A program made the translations under genes and the position numbers. A stretch of 64,000 bases of DNA, from the NCBI GenBank assembly GCA_000708835.1, contig DF237423.1, positions 8,671 to 72,670 of the forward strand. Direction: 5' to 3'. Source of the stretch: Klebsormidium nitens (lineage: Eukaryota; Plantae; Klebsormidiophyceae). The notes below the pieces were generated by a model, which did not search any database, had not been told where the DNA came from, and saw nothing but the letters and a program-made list of their open reading frames with translations. Positions 43,536 to 64,000 of this stretch are shown piece after piece. Positions within the stretch are counted from its first letter, which is position 1, and the number at the start of each line of letters is the position of its first letter.

Positions 43536-44900
43536 TCAACGTTCCATGTTCTCAAGCTCAAAGATCACTCCTGGAAATGTTCTCTGTAGCTTGAAGAAGC
43601 TGTTCATAGAGTCAATCAGGCCATCCGTTTCCTCACTCCTTTCTGAATCTAACATCACGTATACCTCAACTGCGACTTTCTCAAGAAGCGGGGAGTTTGG
43701 AAGGAGGCTATGCAGATTCTTGGTCAATTCCAGAAGGTCAAAAATATCGAGATTACAAAACCTGAGATGCCGTAGGTGCCTTAGGCTAGGACCCCGCTCC
43801 ATCAGGCCGCTCGGTGGCAATTTGGATGTTTCCACTTTGAGGTATTCCAGCAAAGGATTTGAGATTGCCACTTTTTGAAGCATCACTGTCAGGTTGATCT
43901 CCATCTCGTCATCATCCAAGCCCAGTACCCCTTGATTGAACGTGAAATCCTGAAGACTGGGGCTATTGTCGAGCAGCTGAACCGTCTGCTCCCAAGTAGC
44001 ATTGATCAAATCCAGAGCCGTCAACGAAAGCAGCTTGTGTCTGACAACCAAGGTAAACCGATCTTCTTCGAAGTCGTCGTTTTTCCTATGTTCCTCCTCG
44101 AAGCGCAGCGAAATACGCTGAAGGCTGGGGGTGGACGTAAGGTCGATGCGAAGCGCTTCAGCACGAGAAGCTAAGTCGAGGTTCAAGCTTTCCAACCTCT
44201 CAAAGTTCAAGCACAGCGTTCCTTCCAGTCTCCCTTGAAGAGAAAGGCTCTTCAGAAAAGGGCATGCCTGTGTCAAGCTAACCTGGTTCAGCACCCCGAC
44301 CAACTGATCCCCGCTGCAATTCGAGAGCCTCAACTCGGAAAGGTTGTTGGGGAAGGAAAGCTGCCATGAGCATCCTTGGTGTCGAAAAACCTTCCTCGTG
44401 CATAATTTGAGCCGCTTCAGATTGCTGCACCGCGAGAGAGACTCCAGCATGAAGTCGGTGAAAGTGAGCTCGTTTTCGTCAAAGGGTGGTATGTCGAAGC
44501 GCTCCTCACTAATGATGAAGGCGTATGGATCGTGGTAGGTAAAGTCTTCGAGAGTATCCCTCAGAGACTCAATCCACTTGGCGGGAAAGACCTCAGACAG
44601 CTTGCAGCTATTCCCTGCGCTCTTGCAACTGTCGCAATGGCGATCTACAATTCTCAGTCGCAGGGTTTTCACGTTCTGCGCCTGTGCAAGGAAGCGGCCG
44701 TATGCTTTGGTGGACTGGCAGTCCTCCCTGCTGGCACAAGTCATGCAGCCGATCTCTAACTCCACATCCTTGATACCTCTGGCTGCCCTACGGAATGCTT
44801 TGCTCACTCCTGATATTTGCAACAACTCCTTCATGCTGAAACCCTTCATCAGAATCACGGTGAGCAGATCTGTTGGAAGGACTTGAATAGGAGGAGCCAT
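43536..44900 (-). CDS. F-box/LRR-type protein, intronless (454 aa)
   Basis: Single ORF. N-terminal F-box IQVLPTDLLTVILMKGFSMKELLQISGVSKAFRRAA followed by LxxLxL repeats (CSNLKRLKL, LSELRLSNC, LKSLSLQ, LESLNLDL). Confidence 0.8.
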   Translation of the reverse strand: MAPPIQVLPTDLLTVILMKGFSMKELLQISGVSKAFRRAARGIKDVELEIGCMTCASREDCQSTKAYGRFLAQAQNVKTLRLRIVDRHCDSCKSAGNSCKLSEVFPAKWIESLRDTLEDFTYHDPYAFIISEERFDIPPFDENELTFTDFMLESLSRCSNLKRLKLCTRKVFRHQGCSWQLSFPNNLSELRLSNCSGDQLVGVLNQVSLTQACPFLKSLSLQGRLEGTLCLNFERLESLNLDLASRAEALRIDLTSTPSLQRISLRFEEEHRKNDDFEEDRFTLVVRHKLLSLTALDLINATWEQTVQLLDNSPSLQDFTFNQGVLGLDDDEMEINLTVMLQKVAISNPLLEYLKVETSKLPPSGLMERGPSLRHLRHLRFCNLDIFDLLELTKNLHSLLPNSPLLEKVAVEVYVMLDSERSEETDGLIDSMNSFFKLQRTFPGVIFELENMER

Positions 44901-45683
44901 TGGGCTTTCTCCTTGCTGCTTCTCTCTCCAGCTTCTTGTTCTCTGCCACGACGTCAAGCCTCCCTCACCCTCGAAACGCCCAAAGCAGAATGCGGCAATG
45001 CAGCCAATTAAATGCTAATCAATGCAGCTACATGCAGTATGATTACACGCGCACGCGCGCGTAAGACCTTACGGTTAAGGCGGCCAGGCCGGCCGCGCGT
45101 CTCAAAGGGGCGTGAGTCCACGGTCCGCGACGCTCGGCTGGGGGCCCCGCCGGCCCGTGCATGCATTGCTGGGATTGCATGAATTAGCTATAATGTAAGA
45201 TCTAATACGTGCTTCAGTCACACCGTACTGGAAAATAGGTAGCTTAGTAGGACATCGCACCCATGCGCAGATCAGGCTAGCAGGAGGCTAGCAGCGTCGC
45301 CGCGTGAATTCTTGAAAGCAAATGATATCCTTGTATTCACGACTGCATGAGGGGGTGGCTGCAACAGCTGCACCCACTTTAAAGGTCAAGTCAGAGTCAA
45401 ACATGTGATCATTCAGTGAAGATAATATGAAGCTTCGCTCGCTAGCCAGGCGGCCATTTGAGCCTGGTCGGGCACATATATGCAACCCCACTTTCCAACT
45501 CAAAGTTAGTCACCCAGCCTCCATCGCCTTCACGCCTTCATTTGGTAGCATTACAGTACTCTTGATGAGCGCCTTTGGTTTCTGGACTCAATTCTGATCA
45601 TTCGGAGACAGCCGACGAGCTACAAACATACGTTGTTTGTCAGATTATGCTGCTGAAGGGTGATAAGAGCGGACGACAAATCC

Positions 45684-52108: not shown

Positions 52109-55100
52109 ATGGGAGCAGCAAGCAGCTCCGATGCTCCTCCTGACTGCGCGCAAGGAGTCCGCTTCACCAGCATTCGAGGGGTTGGGGCCGCTGACGTGCT
52201 CTGGGATGGAGATGATTGGGGACGATCAAAAGGTATTTACTTGATGCCCTTTGCTATCACAATCAGCATTTGCCCCCCTGGTTTTTGAGTTAAGCTGGAC
52301 TAATTTCAATTCCAGAAGCGCTGCATCGCTACGAAAACTCAACCCGGAAGAATCAATGAGAATCTCAGAATTGTATAGGGTGCCAGTTCCGCAACAATTG
52401 TCTCACTGAGCGCTGTTGGTTTTTCCACAATTGCATGTTGGCGCCACCGCATGTCGTGGACAAAGTGTTGGCATAGATTGCGAATAGCCCCCTGTTACTT
52501 CACAAGCTTTGATCTTTCTGAGATACAAGCTTTTCAAGCCAACCAGAAATACACCGATTAGCAACTGCCACCAGGAAGCTGCATCTTTGAAATCTACCAG
52601 GCTTGCGAGGCGTATCAGCTTGAAAGATGGAAGCAGTCATTGCCACCTCTGCCAGAAGTGCATTGCCACCTCTGCCAGAAGTGTTGAAAAGGGGAATTGA
52701 TCATTGACAATCCAAAAGCAGAACAGTTCTTTGACAGTTGCACATTTGAAGGTCTGCCAGTTCCAACCAGACATTAAGGCAGTGTAGCTGAATACCATGA
52801 TGTCAGCTTTTCTCATTGATGCTTATGGCATGATTTCCTGTTGCAGGTGGTCAGTTGTTAGAATCAAGGATGTTTGAGTTGGAGATACACACGTTTCCAG
52901 AAAGAGGGCCTCCGCTCGCGTCCATGACCAACAATCTGTTCACCCGGGACTGGGCGAACCCCATTCTTTCAAACTTCAAGCTAAGAAGGTAGGTCAGGAG
53001 CCTCCGAAGATTGTTCAGTTGAGGCAGGGACACCAAGTATACTCATAGGCACTCCTCTTGAAAGAGACGCTGGCAGATCTGCACGTAACGTCTTACAAGG
53101 TCAGTGGGAAGTTGATTCCTCCCGTGCAAGGCAGCCTTTCAGCAGTCCAGCTTGCTCTGCACCGGCTCCTCTTTGGATTCTTGCCTTTGCTTCTGATTGC
53201 CACTAGTAGACTTCACCAGCAAAGATGGATACCCCACGTTTCAGGGTCCAGAGAGCCAATGATAAGAAGCCAGAGCACCTTCGGCTGGTCAAGATACGGG
53301 GGGACGGCAAGTGTCTATTCAGAGCTATGGTGAGAATATTCTCTTCCCACTTTCTTCAACTGGCTGACCTTCCAACCCATTCTCATCAGCAAGGCTTCAA
53401 CTTCAAGAATAAATCACATATGTTGCTTATTCACACGTCGCAATCGTCCAGTGGGCTGGGCGCTCATCTCGACCTTGAGCAGACGTTTCTGTTGCCATCA
53501 CAAGCTGGTGTTTGACATTTGAAAGCTCATTCCGGCACGCAGTTTTTTTGTCGTCTGTTGATCAGAAACGGCAGGACAACCACAAAGTCAATCCAGAAGG
53601 TGCAGCCTTTACTTGGTTTACATGTCGTAAGGTATTAATCTAGACAAGACGTTGTTCAAATGTACGTCCTCTTTTTGACCCGTTCCGTCTTCTCCTCCAG
53701 GCATGCGGCCTTGCTGCGAATAAAGGAGAGGTCCTCGGGTTTCGGGAAGAAGAAGAAGCAGGTCCGTTGGCCTTCTTGCATTGCGTGCTAGTTGGCTGAG
53801 GCCAAAGCTAAGAAAATTGCTATCAGCATGTTCTAGCTGATTGACTATATTCAGTGATTCTCCTCCAACGCTTTACTAAAACGGAGTGGGCCCGAACCCT
53901 TCTTGGCCCGTCCTAAACGCTAAGATGAGAGGATAAATACAAGACGTTCCGCTTGTTTCTGCACAAGCTGAAAGCGTTCAAAAAGGTTCGTACTGATAAC
54001 CACCGATTGTTTCCAGATAACGGACGCTGAACCCGTTCTCACTGCTCTTGCGAATGCAGACAGTCTGCGCCTGGCGGTACACGACGCCCTATGTACAAAC
54101 GAGCGGCGGCGGCGGCAGTACGAGGAGGCCCTCATTGCAATCACTTTAGACCAGTCCGTCGAAAGGTAAGACCGCAAGCCTAACCACTGCATGCCGAACC
54201 AATTTGATTTGCGGAGTCTCAGTCTTTGATTCTTTACAGGCGTCAAACCGCGTTGCTCTTCATGAGTCGAGTGTGGAAGACTGCCATCAGTGTAAGTCTC
54301 AGTTGTGTGTTTGTACGACAATCTCATCTCAGCTTTATAGACGTTCTTTCAAGTGCAGCGTGCCTCTTTGTTCGGATTCTTTTTGTTATCTCGTCGGATC
54401 TGTCTGGCTGCCCAAAAGGCGGTCAATCGAACATTCCTTTCCTAGGAGCTTTGCGGTTTCCTGCCCAGTTACCCTCTGTTAGCTGTTGTTAAGTATGCTT
54501 CGCTGGAGTAGCTCGTCACAAGGCCACTCCCAAACTCGGTTTCTCTAGCTCTGTTTCTCCCCAGCCTGTGGATAAGCGTTTGAAGAATCCGCTGACTCGC
54601 GCTTCTACTTGCTGGTCAGCGCCGAATGTATATATGACTGCCGTAGGAAAGCCACTTCCTTTCCGGGTTGCAAGCAGGTACTGCACGCGATTAAGCAGAC
54701 CAGATTTCTGGGGAGGGGAGCCGGAAATGCTGGTGAGTTCGCGGTCGTGGATTCGGAATCTGCGACTCGGTCTTCTTGCAGGTTGTATGGCGTCCCGTCT
54801 AATACAGGGTCAGTACGGCAGACCTTCTTACATGAGGGCAAGCCAATTTGCGAAGTTGCTGGCCTATTTCCAAGTTGTTGGGACACAACGGACAATTTGT
54901 GCGTCGGCCAAGTGCGAAGTCCGCAAACTTGTGAAAGAAACTTATGGATCGGCCAGGGTTCTGGGATTGTCCAGAACCTTCTAAATTCCAGGTACGTTTT
55001 ATGATTGATCAATGCGTTATCGTCTTTTCCATTACGCAGGTCTTATCTCGAATGCTCAAGCTGCCAATATACGTCTACGTTCCAGAATCGACGGTAAGCG

Positions 55101-55471
55101 TGGCTCCTGTTGACCTTCCCCAATTCGGACGTTCGACTGCCTGGGCGGATTCCGGTCGGAAGCATCAGCATAGACAGATAATTTGTCATCACCAAACCGT
55201 CTTCTTTCCTCCAACGTGTGTGCAACAGAGAAGCAAAACCCAAGAGTCGATTTTGATGAATCGACAGCCGTTATCCCCATTGCGCTTTACTGACGTCGGT
55301 TGCTCTGCCTTGCTTTTGCAGACGAGGTTCAAGTCCGCTTTAGGCAGCGGGTTTGTGCCGATTCAGCAATACGGTGAGGAGTTCGAAAAGTCGACGAAAA
55401 CCAAGAAGCCTCGAAAACCGGTGCGGCTGTTGTATAACGGACACAATCACTTTGACCTTCTAATACCTTAA
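52109..55471 (+). CDS. OTU3: OTU-domain deubiquitinase, plant OTU3-like
   Basis: Exons 52109-52232 (tentative), 53220-53329, 53701-53761, 54060-54165, 54678-54732, 55040-55093 and 55322-55471 are in phase. Catalytic IRGDGKCLFRA, DFWGGEPEML, VRLLYNGHNHFDLL. Confidence 0.85.
52638..52683. repeat. Perfect 23-bp tandem duplication (cattgccacctctgccagaagtg x2)
   Basis: Read directly from the sequence. Confidence 0.9.
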
Positions 55472-57581: not shown

Positions 57582-58296
57582 GGGTACCGTCATTTTGAAG
57601 CTGGTACCCCCCCATTCTTTTATAGGGGGTACCCGTTAGAGGCTTGACTCAACAATTTCAGCCGCCCCGGGGGGGGGGCTAGGAGTGAGTCGAGCTCTCA
57701 GGCGGGGAGGGGGGGGGCGCTTGAGGCTTGGGCCGAAGGCCCAAGCACAGGCGCTTGATTGGTCAAATACCCACATAATCATCAGAANNNNNNNNNNNNN
57801 NNNNNNNNNNNNNNNNNNNNNNNNNNNNNNNNNNNNNNNNNNNNNNNNNNNNNNNNNNNNNNNNNNNNNNNNNNNNNNNNNNNNNNNNNNNNNNNNNNNN
57901 NNNNNNNNNNNNNNNNNNNNNNNNNNNNNNNNNNNNNNNNNNNNNNNNNNNNNNNNNNNNNNNNNNNNNNNNNNNNNNNNNNNNNNNNNNNNNNNNNNNN
58001 NNNNNNNNNNNNNNNNNNNNNNNNNNNNNNNNNNNNNNNNNNNNNNNNNNNNNNNNNNNNNNNNNNNNNNNNNNNNNNNNNNNNNNNNNNNNNNNNNNNN
58101 NNNNNNNNNNNNNNNNNNNNNNNNNNNNNNNNNNNNNNNNNNNNNNNNNNNNNNNNNNNNNNNNNNNNNNNNNNNNNNNNNNNNNNNNNNNNNNNNNNNN
58201 NNNNNNNNNNNNNNCGAGGGGGTCCTAGAAAGGTGGCTTCGAAAAAAATGGTCGATTTAAGAATGGGGGGGTGCCACTTACAAAATGACGATACCC
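57582..58296. mobile_element. Non-autonomous DNA transposon (38-bp imperfect TIRs, 3-bp CAA TSD; PIF/Harbinger-like) spanning the assembly gap
   Basis: Left gggtaccgtcattttgaagctggtacccccccattctt versus reverse complement of the right end gggtatcgtcattttgtaagtggcacccccccattctt (33/38). CAA at 57579-57581 and 58297-58299. Confidence 0.75.
57788..58214. other. Assembly gap (427 N)
   Basis: Run of n. Confidence 1.
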
Positions 58297-59820
58297 CAAC
58301 AAGCATTTGAGGCCGAGGAATTTGGCGCGTAAGGGTCCGGCCAGGGAATGAATGACAGGTAGATCGCCGCGTTTTGTCGTTTCCCTTCTGAACTTCGGAT
58401 TGGCCAGCGCAAACCGCCGGTTAGGTCAATTTTAACATCGAAATCGGCGGGTCCGATTGATCCACCGTTGCCCGTAACCCCGCACAGCACGGGAAATGGT
58501 GGTGTATTGTTTCGCGGGCGTCCTCGCGGACTCCCCGCGCGGACGGGTCGTCGGCGGACTCGGGCGAGTTGCCCGGCATTAGCGGACTGAGTGCGGACGG
58601 TCGCACTTTCGGGTCGAATCTGGCAGTACCGTGCTGACGGACTCAGGCAATTTTATACTGCCGTTATCGCTGCCGGTTTTGAATAGATGCAACCTGGGAG
58701 GTTCTGCCTTTTGGGTTAGAATCTGGGTTAAAAGATGTGCTTCTCATTTAGGGTTTTCGAAGCTAGTACAGGCTGTCCCTGAATCATGCAAGGAGTGCAT
58801 CATTCAGGGAGAACGCTGATTCACAAGCCTCCAAGGATCGCATGCACTTTTTGCTGGTAAAAGCTCTTGCTGGTAAAAAGCTCTAGCTGGAGCTTTGAGG
58901 CGTTGCAGCTACGTGTGGCAGCAAGTCCAAGCTAAGCTGTATATGGACGGCAGGGTGGGGCCAATACTCTGTGAGCTAATTTAGCGAAGGTGCTGATTTG
59001 AATTAAAATCTAGCCATTGAGATGGGGGCATCCAGTAGACTCGGATTAAAGTTTGGGTGCAGTTGTTTGAGTATTCTGAACAGAAGGACAGCAAGTATAG
59101 GGGCTGCTTTCTCCCAGCTCGAAGTGACAACAGCTGCAGCGGTAAAACCTTTTGTTGGCGTGGTGGAGGGTATTTCAAAGGATCAAACATCTTTCACAAA
59201 CCAGCAATTGGGTTTGAATTCTGAGCTGCCCTGCAGTCCAGCAGTTGTGGTTTGCTCTGTCAGTAGCACCATAGAACCAGCAAGCAGAAGGGGGCATGGT
59301 TTTCGGTGGCCCTTAGGGTTGGCCCTTCTTGCTCCAACGCTCGCGGCAACTGAATTGGTAAGCCTGGGCCTTTTGTTGCAAAACACATTCCATTTTGATT
59401 GCAAGTTGTTCTCTGTTTTTCCCATCTGTTTCTGGATTTTTGAAAAACTAGATGCCATAGTCAATCGAGGAGCCTGTCAGACACAAAACCAGGTACAGTT
59501 CAGAGAAGTGCTGGTCAGCTTTTCTAAAAAGCTCATTTGCTTAACTTGTCTGGACGAAGCAAGCAAAATGCTGGACAGGATATTATCATACTCGTTCACT
59601 CAAGAACCTGGCAGGATGGAGAAAGCAAGCAATATGATTTATAAGCATGCCAATGATTCAACAAAAATCATTGCAATCAAGCTCAGTAATTCCTGATGAT
59701 CATTCTCTTCATCTTCAATGAACGCAAGGTCATTGGCCACAACCTTCAAAGGGTTTATGGAGAGACTTCTCAGATTGGCGGGCTCCACATGTTAAAGCAG
59801 ACTTTGTATGCTTCTCACAG

Positions 59821-62800
59821 ACGGCGCGCGCTGCGGATGAAGATGATGCATTCGATGACCTTGAGCAAGTTGAGGAGTTGGATATGGAAGATGCAGCACT
59901 TGAGTGGGGGTGGACGAGCGGTCTGATAGTGACAGCTCGATCTCGGATATGGAAGGCGATGACCCTGTCGATGAAAGTCCAGATCAAACAAAGGTGATCC
60001 TGACCAAGTTAGCTGCGGTGCGCTCGGATGCAACAAGAAGACTTTATCGTGTAAACACAAGAGACTATCAGGTGAGCTGCAAACATTTGATACTTCTTTT
60101 TGATCTAAGCTAGTAGCTGAACGTGCCATGGTGCCCATTGTCAAGACTGAACACATGTCTTCTTCGTCTTTCAAAAATAGATATGTGCTAAGGAAGGTAA
60201 TTTCTTTCTTCGTTCCAGCGCTTCTGGGAAAGGAAACATCTGCTGAAAGCTGGGACGACAGTGCCCCGTGCAGCCGTCACCAAAGCAGGGGTTGGAAAGT
60301 TTATGGTGGCAAAGCGCAAGCGGGTAGGTCTTCTGTCCAGATTGATTATGGTGTCTAACGGGTTTTATGTGCAGAATGGTGCTTGTGTGTCCAGAAATGG
60401 ATGTGATCAGATTGGTTCTGGTTGCAAATTGCAGTCAACAGGTTTTTTGCAGAAACTACAGAGACGCGATGTCTTCTAATGTGCATCGCGTGCATGCTTG
60501 TTACCTCTACATCTGATCTGACCGTGCGTGTACCGCTTCGTGTGCAGTCACACTCTTGGCTGAACAACCATTTGAAAGCGTTCCAGTGGGTTTTTAGAGC
60601 ATACAAGCGGTCAGCAGATGCCACAGTCCCGGACCTGCGAAGACTGGCGGTCGTTGAAGATACTATGAAGTTTGCAAAAGAGAAGAGCGCGAATCGTGCA
60701 AAAGAGTAAGTGGAAAGGCTCCTCATGAAGTTTCATGGTTTGGCAAATACTTGAGAGAACTCGTCAATGAATCCTGCTCTGTTTAGCTTAAAAAGCTGGT
60801 TAACGTTGAAAGAAAGGAGGTTTACATGCGGACTGGAGTTCCGTCACTTTTAGCTTGCTCTACTCAACATAGTGCAATTCGAAGCCTGGGCTATCCAAGG
60901 TTGAAACCTGCCCTTTTTATGTCACGTTATTCTAAGCCCGGATACTTACACTTTCTTGTTCCTTTTGTGCACAGTGAGTATGAGGACCGCCAGAAAGGGT
61001 TAAGTGCAGGTTACAGCCCGCAGGAGTATTGTCAGATCAGCGAGTACTGGTTGAACATGCTCAGGAAAGGCCACAGAGGGGATGCCAAGGAGCCACCTCC
61101 CTTCACAGCCCTCCAGCTAAGGTAAGTCTGCTGTCACTCGAACTTCCTTGGTAAACAGATGTTTGAGGGTTAGCAATAGGTGTTACGTAATCTCTTTCCA
61201 AAGTTTTCCCTTGATTTTTGTGGATTGTCGCTTGCTGGATTGTCGCTTGCTGCTTTTCTTCGCTGTGTCTCTTCTTGTTGCGCCCGGCTCTCAAGTTTTT
61301 ACCTCATTATTTTGTCTTCGCCCCTACAGGGCGGACTTCCTCTGGTTGAATACTGCTCTAGGACGTGGCCAAGATGCCTACAATCGGCAGCTACCTGACC
61401 AATTCGTGTACAACATGCCATACGTGGGCCCGGATCAAGCGGACGTCTTTGCTACGGTCACCAGAAACGGCAAGACTAACAAGGTTAGTGTCTATCGTTA
61501 TTTGAATGGATTCAAGCAGGCTTTGCTGCCATGCACGCTCAAGCATTCATTTGCCTCTGGACACTAGCCTCCTCTAGCCACAAACCTTAAGTGTCCGTTG
61601 GGCCAGTATAACGAACCGTAGATTTGTAAGCTGCGGATCCCTCATTGATCAGTCATGCTGACCAGTCATGCCGCAAATCATTCTGAATGTAGTGTTGAAG
61701 CCAATCTTTGTGGCTAAATTGCTGATCTTTGTAGGTCATCTGTTGATCTGGTTTCTTTTCATCTTTCTACAGAATGCAAGGGCGGAGTTCATCGGCGCTC
61801 TTCGGAACCGCAACGTCATGATCTGCTGCGTTGGGGCGGAGGCCATGCGAACAATCTGGCGTTTCCACATTGACACGGATGCCAACACTTCTTGCCCCGA
61901 TTTCAGCACCAAGCAAGGCTGGTACGTACATACAGTCGTTCGGACTGTTGATTGTGAGCTTGTTGGCAGTAGTCGGCAACACTTACTTCCTTGTTTAGTT
62001 CAACCTCTGATTGAATATGATGATCAGATTTGCCCTCGTTGCTTCAAAGGGTCAAGGATGGCAGGACATTGAAGGCTCCTCTGAGCGGCTTGGTAGCTCA
62101 GTACCTAAGCCACTCAGGTGGCCAACATTTGTCTTTTTCACGAGTGTTCCTCGCTCGGTTTCCAACCGTTTTCAACTCTCCCCTCCTAGGTATGACACGC
62201 CCGTTGCCCCAGGGCGAGCCACAAAGAAAAACCCGCATGGCCACTTGACGTACAACACCTACTACAAGTACTTCCGAAGTGCCTTTGAAGCAAACAACAT
62301 CTCTTCGGACAAGGTCGTGCATGCTGGACGTGGGCACGGTACGCGGGCGGCAGCTGCAGCAGGGTGAGTGGCGTGACATTTCAACGTCTAACTCCGGTTG
62401 ATGTACTTCGTCAAATCGGTCCGGCTAGCTTCGACTGGACGGAAGGGTCCCGAGCTGGTTAGGATTGCCCTTGGGGAGCTTAAGTTGTGTTGGTGGAATC
62501 TGCCATACGGTTTACTGTGCAGGGTTTCCAATCCAAAAGGAAGTGTGCCGGTTTTATCGAAGTGTTTCGCAACGTCAAAAGTCCACTTCGGCTGTGATAC
62601 TCGCAACCTGCAGGCGAGTACTTAGAGGGGTTCAAAACTAACCAAGTCCGTGTTTGCACCACAGAGCGGACCCCCGAGAGCTCCAGTCGCTCGGCCGATG
62701 GACCTACGCCAACTTCGACATGTCCTATCTCACCAGCCTACTCCCGAAGGCGTTGGTCATTCAGGCCGGGGTCAACAAGGACGACACTAGAGGCCGACCT

Positions 62801-64000
62801 CTACTCAAATCCTACATCGTACCGCGGGGTCGGGTACAGCCTCCGGACGACCTGATCCAGTTGTTGCTGCCGTGGTTGGACGCTGCGTTGGCCGCAATCA
62901 AAGAGGTAAGTAGCATAGATGCGAAAGTTTCCTTACATGTAGGCGGGTATACGAGAACTCAGGCAGGCGAGTGCATGTCAATCGTTGAAAGCTTCGAAAG
63001 CCTTTGCACTATTCACCTGCAACCTGGCGTTCCTTGCAGTGCATCTGACGTTCCTTGCAGTGCATCTTTCAGGGCTGTATGGAAACGGGATTCGAAAGAA
63101 GCCAGGCTTTATGCAATCAGATGGATTGAAAATGATGCGTTGTCAATCTTTGAGAATTATTCTTGCAGAGGAACGTAAGGGGCCGAGCGTCTGACCGAGA
63201 CCTTGCGGCGGAGGGCGTTCTGCTCCGTTGGAGGAAGGAGCGCGTCATCTTCCTACAAGACGCCGCCGCGCTCTGGAGCGCCTACCAGGACCTGACACTC
63301 TATCAACTCCCTGTTTTCAAGCACCCGAAGTGGGAGCCGTTCCGCCAAGAAGTCCTGGCGATGTGCGAGCGGTACAAGGACCTGGCGGTGGACGAGGTGG
63401 ACAACTCAAACTTGCCGGCCGAGGTACGTTTTCTTGAAGACAATCTCAATCATGACGCAAACAGGTGCAAACGTTGGGCCATCGGTTTGCAGGCAGCCAG
63501 CAATGCGAGGCCCCGGTTAGACCGCCTCAGGTTTGCCTGACGCAAGAACGGACAGTTCGTGTTATTAGTGACGCAAGAACGGACAGTCCGGGCTGTCCTG
63601 ACGCAGGAACGGACAGTCCGGGCTCTCGGGCTGTCCCGACGCAATCTTGAACGGACAGTCCGGGCTGTCCTGACGCAAGAATGAACATTACGGGCTGTGC
63701 TGACGCAAGAACGGACCGTTCGGGCTGTTACAAACCGAAGATAAATCAAAGCGCTATTGTGCTCTCTCGAGATTGCTTGCGCAAGAAAGAAGCTGCTCAA
63801 TGCAGAGTCTTTAACCGACAAAGGCTGAAGGCGGGTTCCTAAATGCTTTCAGACGAGACCTGTGTCTTACAAGGATACTTCTTTTCTGCACCCGCAGGTT
63901 GCCACAGCGTTGATGGCCCTCGAGGAGCGCATCATCGCGCTTCACGACCAACTTGCAGAGGTTCGCGCACAGGAGAGCGCCGGGTCGCGAGAACGAGAAG
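59821..64000 (+). mobile_element. CryptonF-like / Ndc10-related tyrosine recombinase gene (10+ exons, truncated by window end)
   Basis: Exons 59821-60071, 60219-60323, 60548-60705, 60975-61121, 61330-61483, 61773-61921, 62190-62363, 62665-62905, 63169-63423 and 63898->64000 join with GT-AG boundaries and consistent phase. YR residues: R (ALGRGQD, 61364), K (GKTN, 61472), HxxR (HAGR, 62320-62331), W (LGRW, 62699), Y (MSYL, 62726). Also PDFSTKQGWYD, YIVPRGRVQPP and RVIFLQDAA, typical of the CryptonF/Ndc10 fold. Confidence 0.85.
63538..63730. repeat. ~30-bp minisatellite (6 copies) with an internal palindrome, in intron 9 of the Crypton gene
   Basis: Unit tgacgcaagaacggacagtccgggctgtcc at 63538, 63569, 63599, 63637, 63671 and 63701. 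Core GGACAG-tccggg-CTGTCC is intact at 63581-63598 and 63653-63670. Confidence 0.9.

Follow-up and report, generated by a model that had tools for sequence, protein, structure and literature searches.

A transcribed, intron-rich gene for a predicted CryptonF/Ndc10-like tyrosine recombinase in the streptophyte alga Klebsormidium nitens

The window analyzed here, a stretch of 64,000 nucleotides from Klebsormidium nitens (assembly GCA_000708835.1, contig DF237423.1, positions 8,671 to 72,670 of the forward strand), carries at its 3' end a split gene whose predicted product is a tyrosine recombinase of the CryptonF/Ndc10 type. All positions below are those of the window. The transcription unit lies on the + strand, runs from about 58.8 kb to the end of the window and comprises at least 11 exons, numbered here from 0 to 10. 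In the exon model rebuilt from the sequence, GT is found at all ten donors and AG at all ten acceptors. All exons are open, each in its own frame, and none of the four codons split by introns (GAT, AGG, TGG and GGA) is a stop. From the ATG at 59949 to base 64000 the exons add up to 1609 bases, i.e. 536 codons, without a stop.

A transcribed and spliced gene at the end of the window

The region from 58001 to 64000 was compared with the contigs of four sequencing runs from four different studies. This stretch, or a part of it, is present in 20 of the 24 listed runs (seven studies). Contigs of the four compared runs are identical to the window (100%), with no differing letters and no insertions or deletions, and all ten GT..AG joints of the exon model are found as spliced sequence in every one of these runs. 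The library type is not recorded as RNA for any of the 24 runs and their RNA nature was guessed; the contrast in depth between exons and introns nevertheless argues that the contigs originate from RNA and not from DNA. Spliced contigs show a depth of 30-220, whereas in five 200-base bins the coverage is zero or stays in single digits (no more than about 7). Two of these bins (59401-59800) lie in intron 0, one (62401-62600) in the interior of an intron, one (63601-63800) in the last intron and one (58601-58800) ahead of the transcript. Bin 62401-62600 has a depth of zero in all four runs. Bins of mixed exon and intron content have a higher depth than these five, and lone unspliced contigs over other introns reach depths of about 3-19. 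The gene is real, transcribed and correctly spliced.

Exon 0 (58787-59357) starts at 58787, 58814 or 58824, depending on the contig, and is joined to exon 1 (59821-60071) by the joint 59357|59821. The original prediction let the gene start at 59821. This position proved to be an exact splice acceptor, as the joint in the RNA contigs demonstrates, and not the beginning of the gene; the upstream exon 0 and with it a tenth junction had been overlooked. The nine in-phase junctions that had been proposed on the basis of the sequence were all recovered. Exons 2 (60219-60323) and 3 (60548-60705) encode parts of the N-terminal region of the predicted product and are followed by exon 4 (60975-61121); the joints of these exons, beginning with 60071|60219 and 60323|60548, occur in all four runs. 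Exons 5 (61330-61483), 6 (61773-61921), 7 (62190-62363) and 8 (62665-62905) carry the similarity to recombinases described below, and the boundaries of exons 5 and 7, like the others, are confirmed by RNA joints. Exon 9 (63169-63423) encodes a conserved region 3' of the catalytic tyrosine and is spliced to exon 10 (63898-64000) by the joint 63423|63898, again in four of four runs. Exon 10 is truncated by the window end, and the transcript continues beyond it: one contig of 2194 letters, whose letter 1384 corresponds to position 63421, extends about 705 bases past the last base of the window.

The recombinase exons show a coding-like periodicity, with a GC content at the three codon positions of 0.60/0.44/0.66. 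A GT90 frame at 250-1308 of the window has equal values (0.57/0.44/0.66).

Recombinase domain, catalytic residues and relatives

The Pfam families were run against the ten exon pieces singly. NDC10_II, the domain common to yeast Ndc10 and the CryptonF recombinases, was the top match for two of the ten pieces, and the matches are collinear along the profile: the match of exon 6 covers profile positions 86-132 (E 0.022, 14.3 bits) and that of exon 8 positions 189-263 (E 0.012, 15.2 bits), both below the curated cut-off of 26.3 bits. A metagenomic protein fragment, P0011 (relatives are referred to by such numbers throughout), matches the same family with 67 bits (E 2e-18). Altogether seven of the eight relative fragments that were scanned matched NDC10_II, and three of these lie above the cut-off (P0011, P0002 with 34 bits and P0003 with 30.4 bits). 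P0011 has no introns between the parts corresponding to exons 5 and 8, and the exons of the window align to it one after the other, with residues 1-43 matched by exon 5 (E 9e-10), 45-89 by exon 6 (E 3e-6), 117-156 by exon 7 (E 1e-9) and 163-233 by exon 8. These pairwise alignments were used in place of a MAFFT alignment (A3), which misplaced exons 6 and 7. In terms of the check that had been proposed, a profile search against Ndc10 domain 2, NDC10_II came out on top for exons 6 and 8 with scores below the cut-off, and P0011 scored strongly. Via the relatives and the collinear alignment to P0011, the assignment of the predicted protein to the Crypton/Ndc10-domain-2 family of tyrosine recombinases is supported. 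Together with the algal-like GC content at the codon positions, this bears out the prediction of an intron-rich recombinase of the Crypton/Ndc10 type in an algal genome; the name CryptonF would in addition call for GCR1_C, which would lie beyond the window.

The complete catalytic set of a tyrosine recombinase can be read from exons 5 to 8. The first catalytic arginine (61364-61366) lies within the motif R-G-Q-D and is followed by the lysine at 61472-61474, both in exon 5. Exon 7 encodes H-A-G-R (62320-62331), and exon 8 encodes the tryptophan (62699-62701) and the putative catalytic tyrosine (62726-62728). All 13 rows of alignment A1 have this tyrosine, and a G-x-W motif is nearly invariant among them; H-A-G-R is common to P0011, P0006 and P0015, and the arginine and the lysine are common to P0011. 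The predicted presence of R, K, H-x-x-R, W and Y was thus confirmed residue by residue, and NDC10_II-type relatives align over the block around each of them. The spacing from H to R is 3, from H to W 26 and from W to Y 9, which is also the spacing in Cre. The catalytic site is therefore kept and not lost as in domesticated genes of the Ndc10/Gcr1 type. No match was found in the ten exon pieces or in the eight relatives to DUF3504, the domain that marks the Crypton-derived DUF3504 genes of animals. Likewise, no reverse transcriptase family was matched by the pieces scanned, with the 3' part of the gene lying beyond the window and 427 N upstream of it; absence of a reverse transcriptase is what separates Cryptons from DIRS and Ngaro elements.

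Relatives were collected by searching exon 8 with phmmer against 1.84 billion representative proteins, which returned 14 matches at E <= 0.001. Twelve of the 14 are short fragments of 80-242 amino acids, the best being P0001 (76% identity) and P0002 (60%). The remaining two, P0013 (1863 amino acids, six short stretches of similarity) and P0014 (756 amino acids, nine short stretches), were set aside, and P0010 was excluded from the alignments, as it has 31 matching residues only. Exon 9 yielded two further relatives, P0018 (89% identity, from Logan) and P0019 (81%, from JGI), both with the same exon ends as the window. P0019 and P0001 are probably parts of one gene, since both come from contigs of 19,503 bases. 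Among the three exon 9 sequences 60 of 85 columns are invariant, and the changes are mostly conservative. In nearly all fragments the similarity ends where the exons of the window end; it is followed by a valine codon, as expected for a GT donor read through, and preceded by acceptor-like read-through. These shared breakpoints suggest that the intron positions are common to relatives of 33-89% identity. The relatives form singleton clusters on one or two contigs each, with the exception of the P0006 cluster, which has two members. Metagenome scans for loci of relatives gave 317 pattern matches with alignment A2 and 264 with P0011, none of which was confirmed, and a word-index search with P0011 returned only P0011 itself and one relative of 95% identity.

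The start of the reading frame

In exon 1 a stop at 59901-59903 bounds the recombinase frame on its 5' side, and the first ATG of this frame is the one at 59949. The 5' part of this exon (59821-59903) reads in another frame as an acid-rich stretch with a strong GAN periodicity; its GC content at the codon positions is 0.85/0.30/0.41. In that other frame the ATG at 59884 reads 37 codons to a stop at 59995-59997. Only one relative was found for exon 1, P0017, on a 797-base contig from ENA; it shows 76% identity over 41 residues and has the same exon boundary. P0017 carries two methionines 21 codons apart in one and the same frame, and the second of them corresponds to the conserved methionine at 59949. 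In the window the same two ATGs are 65 bases apart, as opposed to 63 in P0017. If nine codons are read from 59884, two bases are skipped and reading is then continued in the recombinase frame, exactly 21 residues are obtained. The ATG spacing and the residue count point to a 2-base frame offset at about 59908-59913, just 3' of the start codon that the 76%-identical relative uses. An assembly error is not the source of this offset, since the contigs of the four runs show no insertion or deletion there. The correspondence of the first nine residues with P0017 rests on a hand alignment and the match in length, and BLASTP did not align the other-frame piece to P0017.

As a consequence of the offset ATG 59949 is the only possible start of the recombinase, which would lose about 22 acidic residues. 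Ten ATGs precede this position, four in exon 0 and six in exon 1. In exon 0 a frame from ATG 59022 is open to the donor and in phase; its GC content at the codon positions (0.51/0.55/0.45) is not coding-like. Neither the reading frame of exon 0 nor the frame-0 piece of 59821-59994 matched a Pfam family. Exon 0 is most likely a 5' untranslated region, a reading we hold with some doubt.

Several other accounts of the 5' end were considered and rejected. A coding N-terminal extension in exon 0 conflicts with its GC content and with the fact that the frame continues for 113 codons into the intron. For a ubiquitin-like leader there is no Pfam match in the two pieces just named, and for a 2A leader there is no NPG motif in any forward frame of 58215-60071. 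A classical -1 slippery site is not visible at the frame break. Restoration of the frame by a small intron is at odds with contigs of three runs, which cover 59820-60071 without a joint. It had been argued that the gene, with its in-phase junctions and its full catalytic set, must be young, active or domesticated. The gene is indeed expressed and spliced and its exons are open up to the window end, with the frame offset as the only visible defect, but the conclusion does not follow cleanly with a frame break next to the start codon that a relative uses.

Origin of the gene and its surroundings

The best explanation, to which we give a probability of about 50%, is that the locus represents the recombinase gene of a lineage of Crypton-type DNA transposons, and that this lineage became rich in introns over a long residence in green algae. 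The copy would be low-copy or solitary, with at least 11 exons; its transcript begins at about 58.8 kb and is fully spliced. Its product would start at ATG 59949 and comprise at least 536 codons, with an N-terminal region in exons 1-4 and a catalytic domain of the NDC10_II/CryptonF type in exons 4/5-9. If the protein is made, the tyrosine at 62726-62728 would attack the DNA backbone, aided by R, K, H-x-x-R and W, and the outcome would be conservative site-specific recombination, as in other tyrosine recombinases. For a Crypton this would mean that the element is excised and integrated by recombination of a short terminal sequence with a target resembling it (the Goodwin model, as quoted in PMC9977147). 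Translation of the recombinase, its catalytic activity and its mobility are what we infer on this reading, and translation is in doubt given the frame offset and the ten upstream ATGs. The transposon origin is supported by the recombinase family, by the gap of N about 600 bases upstream of the transcript, by the frame break and by the description of an active, intron-bearing CryptonF with a tyrosine recombinase (YR) and GCR1_C in Chlamydomonas (PMC9977147).

A number of results weigh against this explanation. NDC10_II scores of the single exons (14.3 and 15.2 bits) stay under the cut-off, and eight of the ten exon pieces have no Pfam match at all. A sequence search of the PDB with exon 8, P0011 and a 14-row profile returned no recombinase and no Ndc10, only unrelated chains at E >= 0.03; support for a tyrosine-recombinase fold comes through the Pfam family alone. 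GCR1_C was not hit in exons 9 and 10, the latter being cut by the window end. Cryptons have short (4-6 bp) terminal direct repeats and no terminal inverted repeats; neither ends of an element nor a target site nor a second copy can be seen in the window, and its 64 kb hold no further copy of the gene. Among the contigs of the four runs none falls into the band of 95-99% likeness. Finally, singleton relatives (89%, 81%/76% and 60% identity) with the same introns would fit vertical inheritance equally well.

Vertical inheritance leads to the alternative that the recombinase is of Crypton origin and has been retained by the host, i.e. a domesticated, single-copy gene that keeps its active site and serves the cell. 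We regard this as possible, if on the whole rather unlikely. It agrees with a gene that is expressed and fully spliced in all four runs, is present in 20 of the 24 listed runs and has no close paralogue in the contigs. It also agrees with relatives that share exon ends, differ mostly by conservative changes (with the 60 invariant columns of exon 9) and occur as singleton clusters on one or two contigs, and with codon-position GC values equal to those of the host-like GT90 frame. Against it stand the break in the frame next to the start codon, the ten ATGs upstream, an assembly gap adjoining the gene, and an identity of 76-89%, which would be low for relatives from closely related species. The same frame break is central to the further idea that the locus is a transcribed copy in early decay, in which the break already ends translation of the recombinase and the intact remainder merely reflects how recent the event was. 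Here the ATG at 59884 matches the first methionine of P0017, yet reads only 37 codons; the spacing of the two methionine codons is 65 bases, two more than in the relative (63), and the acid-rich, GAN-rich pattern switches frame at about 59908-59913. Against early decay stand at least 536 codons that are open over ten exons, the intactness of all splice sites, the conservation of the second methionine and the residues after it (76% over 41 residues), a cost of only some 22 acidic residues for a start at 59949, and the frame correspondence with P0017, which was drawn by hand and was not seen by BLASTP. We consider decay improbable.

Two other origins receive far less weight. The sequence might come from a contaminant, e.g. 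a fungus, or from a chimeric join at the scaffold gap, since 427 N (57788-58214) lie between it and the window's algal genes and NDC10_II-type recombinases are best known from fungi. Contamination is unlikely, and we give this origin almost no credence, in view of the 100% identity in contigs of four studies, ten short GT..AG introns at positions common to the relatives, and codon-position GC equal to that of the neighbouring reading frame. Scarcely more probable is a recombinase of a DIRS- or Ngaro-type retroelement. Retroelements with tyrosine recombinases do occur in many eukaryotes (PMC3212892), but the transcript unit holds recombinase exons only, no reverse transcriptase family was found in the pieces scanned, and the matched domain is NDC10_II.

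With respect to known systems, the Crypton reading can be set beside three groups. The closest in kind are elements of Chlamydomonas reinhardtii (PMC9977147), namely CryptonF-1_cRei and another autonomous Crypton family, which likewise are green-algal, have a CryptonF-type recombinase and are drawn with introns. They differ in that insertions and excisions have been shown, in their ends CACCG and target CAYCG, and in the presence of GCR1_C; the comparison was made by description only. CryptonF elements of fungi and oomycetes (Crypton-Cn1 and others) have the same NDC10_II recombinase class and keep R-H-R-Y (PMC3212892). CryptonF is defined there by YR plus GCR1_C and by 6-bp terminal direct repeats, whereas the Klebsormidium gene has at least ten introns and its exons show a weak direct similarity to NDC10_II of 14-15 bits. 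The third group are the host genes Ndc10/Cbf2 and Gcr1 of yeast, which have been linked to CryptonF and belong to the same NDC10_II domain family; in contrast to the Klebsormidium gene, which keeps R, K, H-x-x-R, W and Y, they have lost the catalytic site (PMC3212892).

An extension of the host range, as suggested by the original prediction, is only modestly true, because the active CryptonF in Chlamydomonas reinhardtii already makes green algae known hosts (PMC9977147), and nothing in our analysis points to the horizontal transfer that had also been proposed. In the parts of the literature we consulted there is no description of Cryptons in streptophyte algae including Klebsormidium, and supplementary tables and transposable element libraries may list some. 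What the data add is an RNA-supported record of predicted CryptonF-like recombinase genes, expressed in a streptophyte alga and thus in the lineage leading to land plants. It is a tentative and rather doubtful further step to see in them a catalytically intact Crypton-derived recombinase that is inherited vertically as a single-copy host gene in Klebsormidium-type streptophyte algae. To our knowledge all domesticated Crypton genes (Ndc10, Gcr1 and the DUF3504 genes) are without an active site. If this gene and its relatives turned out to be host genes of this kind, passed on vertically and with the active site intact, they would represent a rare case of a domesticated recombinase still cutting DNA, in the plant lineage.

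Upstream of the transcript, five copies of GCGGAC lie within 73 bases on the + strand (58526-58598, about 200-290 bases before the start of the transcript); over the whole window this motif occurs 52 times versus 30.5 expected. The cluster could be a promoter motif or a set of subterminal repeats. The last intron contains a tandem repeat of units of about 30 bases (63536-63728), each with the near-palindrome CGGACAGTCCG, for which seven matches were counted versus 0.91 expected. The core CGGAC is common to this array and to the upstream GCGGAC cluster. Short exact tandem duplications of about two copies each are found in intron 4 (61221-61252, 15 bases) and intron 8 (63024-63067, 21 bases).

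The sequence preceding the N gap at 57788-58214 is rich in long runs of G and C. On the far side of this gap, 3-5 kb upstream of the recombinase gene and on the same strand, lies an OTU/otubain-like cysteine-protease gene (53225-53515 and 54944-55471), which the gap separates from the recombinase. One exon carries the Cys box, with a match to Pfam Peptidase_C65 that stays under the cut-off (E 0.0086), and the last exon closes with a motif resembling a His box. A Ulp1 protease is found in some oomycete Cryptons. Elsewhere in the window, the frame at 250-1308 on the - strand matches Glyco_transf_90 (E 5.8e-31) and represents an ordinary host-type gene, and a weak F-box-like match is located at 43536-44957, also on the - strand.

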